Below, piece after piece: positions 60,565-63,764 of a stretch of DNA of 64,000 nucleotides. The first letter of the stretch is position 1, and each line of letters starts with the position of its first letter. The translations under genes and the position numbers were made by a program. The stretch lies in contig NIVC01002700.1 in NCBI GenBank assembly GCA_002269645.1, forward strand, positions 17,505-81,504, given 5' to 3'. The stretch is from Macrostomum lignano (Eukaryota). The notes beneath the pieces are model-generated. The model did not search any database. It was not told the origin of the DNA and worked only from the letters and a program-made list of their open reading frames with translations.

Positions 60565-63500
60565 ATGACGCGGAGATCTCTTCTGCTAAGCTGTTTGCTT
60601 CTAGCAGCAGTCAGTCTGGCTGGCAGCAAGAGTACGAATGTAACGGAGGCAACGCTATGGTTTGAGCAGTTCAGCGGGGAGCACAGGATACTCCTGAACA
60701 AGGTGGTGGAAGCCAGCTGGGCGTCCAACACAGACATCAATCAGGAGAATGAGAAGGCCGAACTGGCAGCCAGACTGCAGCTGAGCCAGTTCATGCTCAG
60801 CAAGCGGCAGGAGATGGACAAGCTGTTCGACTGGGCCCACCTGGGCAACGAGCGGCTGAAGCGAATGTTCACCAAGGCTGCCGATATTGGGACATCGATT
60901 GTGACTGATGAGGCCAAGCAGACTCGGGTGAGGCTGGATGGATAGTCAGACAGACAGACAGACAGACAGACAGACAGACAGACAGACAGACAGACAGACA
61001 GACAGACAGACAGACAGACAGACAGACAGACAGACAGACAGACAGACAGACAGACAGACAGACAGACAGACAGACAGACAGACAGACAGACAGACAGACA
61101 GACAGACAGACAGACAGACAGACAGACAGACAGACAGACAGACAGACAGACAGACAGACAGACAGACAGACAGACAGACAGACAGACAGACAGACAGACA
61201 GACACTAAGACAGACAGACAGACAGACAGACAGACAGACAGACACTAAGACAGACAGACAGACAGACAGACAGACACTAAGACAGACAGACACTAAGACA
61301 GACAGACACTAAGACAGACAGACACTAAGACAGACAGACACTAAGACAGAAAGACAGACAGACAGACAGACAGACAGACAGATAGATAGACAGACAGACA
61401 AACGACAAACGGCAGCTTCCCCCCCCTGCAGTTCGGTCAGCTGAGGAGCGATATGATTCGAATTCAGAGCACGGCTACCGTGGAGCATCCAGACACCGGG
61501 GAGCCAATTCCCCTGTCACGAGGTGCGCGCTTTTGAAAAGATTTCTAGCCATAAAATTTCTAAAAGTACATTTAGAGTTTGTCTGTTTCATTTTGCTATC
61601 AAATAACTTCATTCACAATTCATTAAAGTCGTCAGCCTGATGGCCAGCCCTGACGTCAGCGAAGCGGTCAAGAAGGCTCTGTGGTCTCGCTGGAGGGACG
61701 CCAGCGGCAGGCCGGTGAAGCAGATGTACGAGGAGTACGTCGATCTGGCAAACGAGATGATTAAGGAGGCTGGCTACGCGAATTTCGCCAAGTACTGGCA
61801 GAGCTGGTACGAGCCCAAGGAGGGCCAGGATTTCGAGCAGGTTATGGCCGAGTTGTTCAACGGCCTGCTGCCGCTGTACAAGGAGCTGCACGGCTATGTG
61901 AGGCACGCTTTGATGCAGAAATACCCGGCTAGCATCTTCCGCCGACCGGTCACATTCCCGGACACATTCTCGGACACATGTGGGGCGGACGCTGGGACGA
62001 TTTGGAGCCGTTTACGAAACCGTTTCCCAATGAGCCGCAGATCGACGTCACCAAAGTGATGAGGGAGAAGGTGAGGCTGACTGTCTGTCTGTCTGTCTAT
62101 CTGTCTTAGTGTCTGTCTGTCTGTCTGTCTGTCTGTCTGTCTGTCTGTCTGTCTGTCTGTCTGCCTGCCTGTCTGTCTGTCTGTTTGTCTGTCTGTCTGT
62201 CTGTCTGTCTGTCTGCCTGCCTGTCTGTCTGTCTGTCTGTCTGTCTGCCTGCCTGTCTGTCTGTCTGTCTGTCTATCTGTCTTAGTGTCTGTCTGTCTGT
62301 CTGTCTGTCTGTCTGTCTGTCTGTCTGTCTGTCTGTCTGTCTGTCTGTCTGTCTGTCTGTCTGTCTTAGTGTCTGTCTGTTTGTCTGTCTGTCTGTCTGT
62401 CTGTCTGTCTGTCTGTCTGTCTGTCTGTCTGTCTGTCTGTCTGTCTGTCAGATTTTGCATAAAGAGTCTGCATTTGAAACCCGTAACAGAACTGGACAGT
62501 CAGACAGATGTTCGAAGCCAGTCAAGACTTCTTCGCCTCGCTCGGCTTGGGAAACATGACTGACACCTTCTGGGAGAAGTCGGTGTTGGAGAAGCTGCCG
62601 GGAGTTGACATGGTCTGCCACGCGTCTGCTTGGGATTTCTACACTGATAAAGGCGACTTCCGCATCAAGCAGTGCACGGAGATTACCGGCCACTATTTGG
62701 CGGTGACTCATCACGAGATGGGCCACATTCAATACTATCAGCAGTACGAGAAGCAGCCGGTGGTGTTCCGAGGCGGCGCCAATCCCGGTTTTCACGAGGC
62801 CATCGGCGACACCATCGAGCTGTCAGTCATGACCCCGGGGCATCTGAGAAAACTCGGCCTGCTTGAATCGGACAGCGAATCCGATGAGTTCTACCTGAAC
62901 TCTCTGTTCCTCATGGCTTTGAAGAAGGCCGCCTACCTGCCTTTTGGTTATTTGATTGACAACTACAGGTAGAAGCTATGGAGAGAGATTTTCAAGGAGT
63001 AAATTTCGAAAAGGAGAATCTCGGGATGGGAAAACTCGGCAGGGGGAATCTCGGCAGTGGGAATCTCGAGAATGGGAATCCCGGTAAGGGGAATCCCGCT
63101 AAGGGGAATCCCGGGAAGGCGAATCCCAAGAAGGGGAATCCCGGGAAGGCGAATCCCAGGAAGGCGAATCCCAAGAAGGGGAATCCCAAGAATGGAATTC
63201 CCAAGAAGGGGAATCCCGGTAAGGGGAGTCCCAAGAAGGGGAATCCCAAGAAGGGGAATCCCGGGAAGGGGAATCCCAGGAAGGCGAATCCCAAGAAGGG
63301 GAATCTCAAGAAGGGGAATCCCAAGAAGGGGAATCCCAAGAAGGGAAATCCGGGAAGGGGAATCCGGGAAGGGAAATCTGGGATGGGGAATCCGGGAAGG
63401 GGAATTCGGGAAGGGAAATCTTGGATGGGGAATCCCGAGAAGGCAATCCCGGGAATGTTTAATTTCAGGAAGGGAAAACTCGGAAAGGAAGTTCCGGATT

Positions 63501-63764
63501 GGGGAATCTCGGCGATGGGTGTCTTGGGGAGGGAATCCCGAGAAAAAGAATCTTGTGGAGAATTTGTATACCTCTGCCTACTTACACCATCGACAAACCT
63601 ACAGGTACAAGCTGTTCAAAGGCGAGGTGCCCAAGAATCAGTGGAACAGCGAATGGGTGAACCAGCGCTGCAACTGATGGGGTTTCCAGTCCGGTGTTGC
63701 GATCGGAAGAGGACTTCGATGCCGGCGCTATTTATCACGTGGTTGCCAATGTGGAGTACATGAG
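60565..63764 (+). CDS. ACE: ACE-like M2 metallopeptidase copy B, incomplete at window end, with apparent frameshifts. Exons 60565-60927, 61432-61522, ~61626/61629-62070, 62490-62968, 63605-63764
   Basis: Signal peptide [20 protein letters not shown]; [22 protein letters not shown] intact; exon sizes mirror copy A (exon 2 is 91 nt in both). Three 1-nt deletions (61939-40, 63672-73, 63680-83) and a probable lost G at the exon-3 acceptor. Confidence 0.88.
60946..61400. repeat. (GACA)n with cactaa interruptions
   Basis: ACE copy B intron 1. Confidence 0.95.
62080..62450. repeat. (CTGT)n with ttagtg interruptions
   Basis: ACE copy B intron 3; reverse complement of the intron 1 array. Confidence 0.95.
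63010..63550. repeat. ~15-bp G-rich minisatellite (ggggaatcccaagaa)
   Basis: Fills the copy-B-specific intron. Confidence 0.9.

Follow-up and report, generated by a model that had tools for sequence, protein, structure and literature searches.

The window analyzed here, which is the whole 64-kb stretch forming the end of Macrostomum lignano contig NIVC01002700.1 (Mlig_3_7 assembly), encompassed two Peptidase_M2 (ACE) paralogs placed head to head, copy A on the minus strand and copy B on the plus strand. Copy B harbored a spliceosomal intron of 636 nucleotides (nt) at a site where copy A was undivided, and both splice junctions of this intron lay inside copies of one short direct repeat. As judged from its distribution among homologous genes, the intron appeared specific to the B lineage and was best read as a gain. 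It probably arose when satellite DNA was inserted with a target duplication of about 23 nt containing AG|GT (vertical bars denote splice positions), which would have supplied both splice sites.

Junction repeat and lineage specificity of the copy B intron

An earlier note on this DNA had placed a 636-nt phase-2 intron at 62969-63604 inside ...IDNYR|YKLF of copy B, opposite an uninterrupted VDHYRYKLF in copy A, and both descriptions matched the sequence. The left junction read ...ATTGACAACTACAG|GTAGAAGCT, with the G of the donor at 62969, and the right junction read ...ATCGACAAACCTACAG|GTACAAGCT, with the exon restarting at 63605. An Arg codon was split as AG|G, and a TAG stood in frame directly 3' of the donor. 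Once joined, the two exons kept an open frame across IDNYR|YKLF, where the protein aligned without a gap to copy A and to six homologues. From 5' to 3', the intron opened with 9 nt of the repeat (GTAGAAGCT), went on through ~20 nt in which the units were highly degenerate and a 15-nt minisatellite reaching ~63562, and closed with 26 nt of non-satellite sequence and 16 nt of the repeat. The features of this region were as follows:

62490..62968, plus strand: copy B exon 4a (NWTVRQMF...GYLIDNYR), acceptor AACAG|AACTGG, translation in agreement with the GenBank model P0011; its 3' end is the AG of the Arg codon
62955..62977, plus strand: left repeat copy, ATTGACAACTACAG|GTAGAAGCT, made of 14 exonic nt and the first 9 intronic nt; gives the donor
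62969..63604, plus strand: B-lineage-specific spliceosomal intron, 636 nt, phase 2, GT-AG, donor GTAGAA, acceptor CTACAG
62999..63562, plus strand: G-rich 15-nt minisatellite of the B intron (Tandem Repeats Finder core 63011-63488), edged on both sides by GGGAATCTCGG-type units, with an interior of GGGAATCCC-type units
63563..63588, plus strand: non-satellite, pyrimidine-rich 26 nt (TTTGTATACCTCTGCCTACTTACACC), holding TACTTAC at 63579-63585, as read from the sequence
63589..63613, plus strand: right repeat copy, ATCGACAAACCTACAG|GTACAAGCT, made of the last 16 intronic nt and the first 9 exonic nt; gives the acceptor
63605..63764, plus strand: copy B exon 4b (YKLFKGEV...VEYMR), followed by a GC donor at 63765
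54899..55542, minus strand: copy A exon matching B exons 4a and 4b, undivided; the equivalent site falls at 55061/55060, within the Arg codon CGG

Each repeat copy spanned a junction and contained AG|GT. Two 15-mers at 62963-62977 and 63599-63613 (family D5 of the repeat search, spacing 636) were identical at 14 of 15 positions, the figure that had been reported previously. The best local alignment of the junction windows (62955-62977 against 63589-63613) comprised 21 matches, 2 mismatches and one 2-nt gap, giving a score of 16 that was reached by 4 of 5000 shuffles in which the CAGGTA core was held fixed. Scores ranged from 5.5 to 9 in the eight other introns of A and B and from 5.5 to 11 in 25 introns of other ACE genes, so that all 33 control introns stayed at or below 11, and the similarity does go beyond splice consensus, as had been claimed. 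The claim that it continued for about 35 nt upstream did not survive: over the ~20 nt farther upstream (TACCTGCCT... against TACCTCTGCCT...), the observed score was equalled by 2596 of 5000 shuffles. Because this extension was no better than chance, the junction repeat is about 23-25 nt long, not about 45-50.

Longer versions of the repeat were tried and rejected. When the repeat was lengthened to ~45 nt, the added 25 nt on the upstream side of the core aligned no better than shuffles. A longer, eroded exon duplication was also searched for on both sides, and the intron 5' region scored below the shuffle mean against the downstream exon, while the best match of the intron 3' region to the upstream exon (p ~0.04) was out of register and satellite-like. 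The exon-derived part of the intron was limited to 9 + 16 nt, the other ~610 nt being satellite and the 26 nt of unique sequence.

Intron positions were mapped across homologous genes by tblastn and exact splice reconstruction. Copy A was undivided at the site (exon 55542-54899), as were the M. lignano paralogs P0035 and P0037, which form a second pair: P0035 displayed one continuous exon over residues 300-554, and the nearest intron of P0037 was 28 residues downstream of the site, at CGLQ|GVSS. No intron was found at the homologous W/YR|W/Y site in the ACE genes of the mollusc Lottia, the nemertean Lineus or the cephalochordate Branchiostoma, whose common introns in this region were at 424|425, WWxLR| and YIR|YF. 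All four B copies examined, one in the window and three on a second contig, carried the new intron. The gain in B that the earlier note had put forward was thereby supported within this species and against bilaterian outgroups. The codon at the site was CGG in A and AGG in B, and therefore an AG|GT site was offered only by B.

The P0037 intron at CGLQ|GVSS (L003 13696-14012, and L004) was located about 5 codons downstream of the outgroup-conserved WWxLR| position, and A, B and P0035 were devoid of both. It may represent intron sliding or an independent gain, and its junction score was ordinary (7).

Satellite identity and a proposed origin of the intron

The intron body was dominated by a G-rich 15-nt minisatellite with 38 runs of at least 3 G. 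Among more than 30 distinct tandem-repeat families in the window, this 15-mer was found only here and in copy A intron 1 (59199-58401), the two arrays being 3.8 kb apart:

58450..59162, plus strand: other array of the 15-nt family, filling copy A intron 1, antisense to gene A

Units of the two arrays were identical at 14 of 15 positions and shared the same plus-strand orientation, in agreement with the relationship noticed earlier. The A-intron-1 array was entirely of the TCTC type (38 AATCTC, 0 AATCCC), and the B array had AATCTC units at both edges and the derived AATCCC type in its interior, a pattern expected if a TCTC-type seed had been inserted and a variant had then expanded mid-array. 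The A-intron-1 array is a likely source of the inserted DNA. One GAAAAGGA at the left edge of each array was suggestive, if weak, and a search for unique edges shared by both arrays yielded satellite-level similarity only.

The non-satellite ends of the insert (ATGGAGAGAGATTTTCAAGG and GGAGAATTTGTATACCTCTGCCTACTTACACC) were found nowhere else in the M. lignano DNA compared (~170 kb), no terminal inverted repeats were found in the insert, and the intron had no Rfam match. A derivation of the satellite from exon sequence was considered and dropped, the shared GAAAACTCGGC 11-mer and repeat family D4 being at about chance level. Nearly every intron of A and B, as well as the A-B spacer, was filled by a repeat of its own (56174-56811, 57380-58169, 58450-59162, 59976-60338, 60947-61400 and 62077-62449), with periods of 18, 22 and 15 nt along with (ACTG)n, (CAGA)n and (CTGT)n.

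A course of events can be proposed for the birth of the intron. Duplication of the Peptidase_M2 gene into A and B in the Macrostomum lineage would have come first. The continuous exon 4 of copy B would then have been broken at ...GACAACTACAG^GTACAAGCT..., and a fragment of neighbouring satellite DNA, the 15-nt kind that fills A intron 1, would have been inserted at the break, with ~23 nt of the target duplicated so that one copy flanked the insert on each side. This could have occurred through fill-in of a long staggered break, or through replicative template switching that returned upstream of its departure point and re-copied the target. The left copy would have become the donor AG|GTA... 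and the right copy the acceptor ...CTACAG|GT. Because the duplication puts a GT after the left AG and an AG before the right GT, splicing would restore the exact ancestral mRNA and protein.

Later drift of the intronic halves of the repeat would account for a C>G change at donor +4 and, on the acceptor side, for a T>C change and a 2-nt insertion. The change at +4 would turn a mismatch with U1 into a G-U wobble. The CCC satellite variant would subsequently have expanded and contracted within the intron (447-680 nt over the four copies), and the locus would have been amplified into several B copies.

We infer that insertion and target duplication took place in a single step. Alone, a 23-nt tandem duplication amounts to an unspliceable 23-nt insert and a frameshift. 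Since nothing beyond 23-25 nt resembles the exons and 23 nt cannot form an intron, the insert was presumably present from the start or very soon after. The earlier note had headlined a local tandem duplication, with insertion and a long target duplication as its second option; the second option fits better, the bare ~23 nt being too short to splice and no longer trace having been found. Its proposal that the satellite inflated the intron after its origin has to be amended, since satellite DNA probably already belonged to what was first inserted and did not contribute by later inflation only.

It is possible, but unlikely, that the intron originated from a longer tandem duplication of AGGT-containing exon, as in the model of Rogers, and that a satellite invading it or arising inside it later overwrote the duplicate except for ~9 + 16 nt at its ends. 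A repeat across the two junctions is exactly what this origin predicts, the satellite is clearly unstable in length, and every intron of these genes has been colonised by satellite or microsatellite sequence, so secondary colonisation is common in this genome. Nevertheless, past its 5' 9 nt the intron showed no significant similarity to the downstream exon, upstream of its last 16 nt it showed none to the upstream exon, and satellite, including degenerate edge units, directly adjoined the left repeat copy. Two events would also be needed where insertion with target duplication requires one.

An origin from a mobile element is improbable. Such an element, introner-like or a retroelement with a target-site duplication of variable length, would have carried the minisatellite internally, and its target-site duplication would have contained AG|GT by chance. 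A direct repeat does flank an insert of ~590 nt, the same satellite is present at a second site that is also an intron, and M. lignano is repeat-rich (PMC5730564). The insert, in turn, lacked terminal inverted repeats, poly(A), coding remnants and any Rfam match, its non-satellite ends were without another copy in the DNA compared, and the sole other array seen is the one next to it, which favours local copying over transposition.

B copies on a second contig, probable splicing and selection

Contig NIVC01000124.1 of M. lignano (L001) contained three further B copies in tandem, whose junction sequences were base-for-base the same as those of the window copy. Their introns were 447, 551 and 680 nt long, the predicted exon joins being 12373^12821, 37131^37683 and 52434^53115 of L001. 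The junction repeat is not an assembly join, a concern that had been raised earlier, because it was unchanged in these three copies with differing satellite lengths. Applying the proposed splice left the frame intact in all three. Among the four B copies, synonymous divergence (pS) was 0.015-0.043 and the ratio of nonsynonymous to synonymous divergence (pN/pS) was 0.25-0.49, and therefore the B copies are under purifying selection across the junction, though unspliced RNA would stop at the TAG after the donor. Each of the three tandem units of L001 (8560-14470, 31650-39424 and 48686-54712) began with a truncated A-like gene, reduced to exons 1-2, and continued with a complete B gene.

The GenBank model P0011 crosses the junction of L001 copy c3 and matches its variant residues YLSFGY and KGEVPKNQ. 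The Mlig_3_7 annotation was derived from a transcriptome assembly by StringTie and TACO guided by RNA sequencing (RNA-seq; PMC5730564), which gives indirect but reasonable grounds to consider the intron spliced. In the protein collections searched for transcripts and orthologues, the P0011 and P0014 clusters held M. lignano genome-derived models only, and a query of 264 amino acids recovered from those collections only error-ridden ML2 models of the same gene and distant homologues, with no transcript contigs. Evidence for a working gene and for splicing comes from the paralogous L001 copies, not from the window copy. The intron is older than the split of the four B copies, whether the window copy is misassembled or a pseudogene.

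Within the 26 nt of unique sequence, the A of TACTTAC (63584, position -21) is a candidate branch point. Positions -20 to -36 upstream of the acceptor were pyrimidine-rich and the last 18 nt were not, other M. lignano acceptors being comparably weak. The 38 G-runs might act as intronic enhancers. Reverse-complemented, the candidate branch region (63579-63590, minus strand) gave GGTGTAAGTAGG, a near-consensus 5' splice site that is probably a coincidence.

The window copy of B differed from the three L001 copies by three 1-nt homopolymer losses (CCC>CC at 61939-61940, CC>C at 63671 and G5>G4 at 63679-63682), and the frameshifts created a premature TGA at 63675-63677; these had escaped the earlier note. 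A very improbable explanation follows from them, namely that the intron does not function, being either an insertion that stays unspliced in a gene copy undergoing decay or an artefact of assembly at the contig end. Copy B is indeed within the last 3.4 kb of the contig, with the new intron 400-1000 nt from its end, and it is annotated in GenBank as a truncated product of 294 amino acids (BOX15_Mlig008057g2). Against this stand the same intron in the three NIVC01000124.1 copies, with frames intact on both sides and purifying selection, and an RNA-seq-guided model that splices it. All three frameshifts are moreover losses of a single base in a homopolymer, as is typical where a long-read consensus is built from thin coverage at the end of a contig. 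Because the affected stretch falls within 2.1 kb of the end of a PacBio contig and the 1980 nt of copy A were free of frameshifts, the window frameshifts are probably consensus errors at the contig end, which is more likely than a young pseudogene.

Finally, an ancestral intron lost in A and the other lineages, with junction similarity due to splice consensus and chance, is extremely improbable: ancestral introns were clearly lost in M. lignano ACE paralogs (424|425 and WWxLR| are missing from A, B and P0035), but a single gain in the B lineage is favoured because loss would require at least 4 independent events, with separate ones for A, for the lineage of P0035 and P0037 and for three outgroup phyla, and would leave unexplained a junction repeat well above consensus (16 against at most 11 in the 33 control introns).

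Several observations weigh against insertion of satellite DNA with a target duplication as the source of a functional intron. Support for splicing is at the level of annotation and not of reads, and P0011 is a chimeric model over three tandem copies (44.7 kb) in which exons of different copies are mixed. GGTAAG motifs occur in the intron satellite, 2 of them in the window copy (63074-63230) and 7-10 in the L001 copies, and these potential cryptic, competing donors look stronger than the GTAGAA donor. A duplication of 23-25 nt also exceeds those of most transposons. The neighbouring array is a candidate donor and no more, because the edges of the two arrays are similar only at the satellite level, and the ~170 kb of M. 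lignano DNA compared in total limits the coverage of the genome. A young intron could also have existed already and acquired the satellite afterwards, for instance through ectopic exchange with the neighbouring array. The duplication is, in addition, longer than the 4-12 bp that accompany intron gains by break repair in Daphnia (PMC4202315).

Gene structures, gene conversion and known intron gains

Positions 50565-64000 of the window were 100% identical to the end of NIVC01002700.1. Copy A encoded an intact protein of 659 amino acids, with 98% identity between its conceptual translation and a M. lignano UniProt entry. A and B were the closest paralogs of each other (57% identity). Matches to PF01401 had E = 4e-199 for A and E = 5e-204 for P0011, which represents B, both spanning positions 2-581 of the 581 in the profile, and the zinc-binding motifs HEMGH...HEAIGD were visible in both proteins. 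The exons of the two genes were distributed as follows:

59556-59200, 58400-58310, 57317-56872, 55542-54899, 54797-54675 and 53923-53605, minus strand: exons of copy A
60565-60927, 61432-61522, 61629-62070, 62490-62968 and 63605-63764, plus strand: exons of copy B, which leaves the contig beyond the last of them

Directly after exon 4b, at the conserved VEYMR|YF position, copy B had an intron whose donor was GC (AG|GCGAG) in all four copies (63765-63766 in the window; 12983, 37845 and 53277 in L001); copy A displayed a GT donor there. Splicing from the GC donor to ...TTTTCAG|ATAC restored VEYMRYFLSLLLQ.

Synonymous divergence between A and B was uneven along the genes, with a pS of 0.33 in exon 4b (63605-63764 against A 55060-54899) and of 0.67-0.86 in every other exon. 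A run of identical A/B codons started exactly at the new acceptor and ended at the 3' end of exon 4b. This pattern suggests gene conversion between A and B over exon 4b, in a tract delimited by the new intron. The intron may have pre-existed and blocked the tract, or paralog-templated repair and intron birth may have been linked. If the intron blocked the tract, it would be at least as old as the conversion and far older than the amplification of B. That intron birth and paralog-templated repair were a single event has a low probability, and its simple one-step version is awkward because the satellite and the converted exon are oppositely oriented relative to gene A.

The gain in ATP2A1 (2011, PMC3265369) resembles the present one in being a paralog-specific intron at an AG|GT site, in which a duplicated AGGT gave donor and acceptor from separate copies, the protein remained unaltered and the sister paralogs retained an undivided exon. 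There, however, the duplication was inferred and its traces are gone, whereas the 23-25-nt repeat of M. lignano is still readable. In addition, an intron under the model of Rogers consists entirely of duplicated exon, while that of M. lignano holds 9 + 16 nt of it, the rest being foreign satellite. Closest in repeat size are the introns of fission yeast (Zhu & Niu 2013), built, as far as the summary in PMC4974935 describes them, on an AGGT exon unit of 24 bp; their body consists of more copies of that unit, in contrast to the unrelated 15-nt satellite found here.

Neointrons of Daphnia pulex, attributed to insertion at double-strand breaks with staggered ends (Li et al. 2009; Li et al. 2014, PMC4202315), likewise contain a non-exonic insert flanked by a direct repeat of the target. 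They differ by repeats of 4-12 bp, about half the length of the M. lignano repeat, and by being polymorphic and very recent, whereas the M. lignano intron predates the amplification of the B copies and a likely source of its filler can be named. In introners (e.g., PMC4457414), too, an inserted sequence turns into an intron and a target duplication contributes, but the M. lignano insert bore no sign of a multi-copy family in the ~170 kb compared, nor of terminal repeats, and its second copy is the neighbouring array. The intron of the potato RdRp gene (PMC4974935) is also lineage-specific and derived from a local duplication whose copies are still recognisable; that tandem duplication crossed an intron-exon boundary and re-used the 3' signals of an older intron, while the M. 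lignano gain involves no earlier intron. The M. lignano case lies between the tandem-duplication model of Rogers and ATP2A1 and the model of insertion during break repair drawn from Daphnia. No paper linking Macrostomum to intron gain was found in the literature. Because the kind of event is already known, the intron represents a new and unusually legible example rather than a new mechanism.

As the literature stresses, the DNA from which gained introns derive is in most cases unknown (PMC4974935), and few gains keep a readable footprint of their origin. In the present gain, the AG|GT-bearing target survives in duplicate at the two junctions, the DNA inserted between them is still in place and a nearby array offers a plausible source for it; the sister paralog, undivided at the site, is only a few kb away. 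A speculative extension, which we regard as improbable on present evidence, is that introns of M. lignano have recurrently arisen from short arrays of neighbouring loci, copied in by break repair or template switching, with long target duplications giving both splice sites, with arrays rich in G-runs aiding intron definition, and with intron birth and paralog-templated repair perhaps forming one event. As transgenesis exists for M. lignano (PMC5730564), the birth of such an intron could be re-enacted experimentally.

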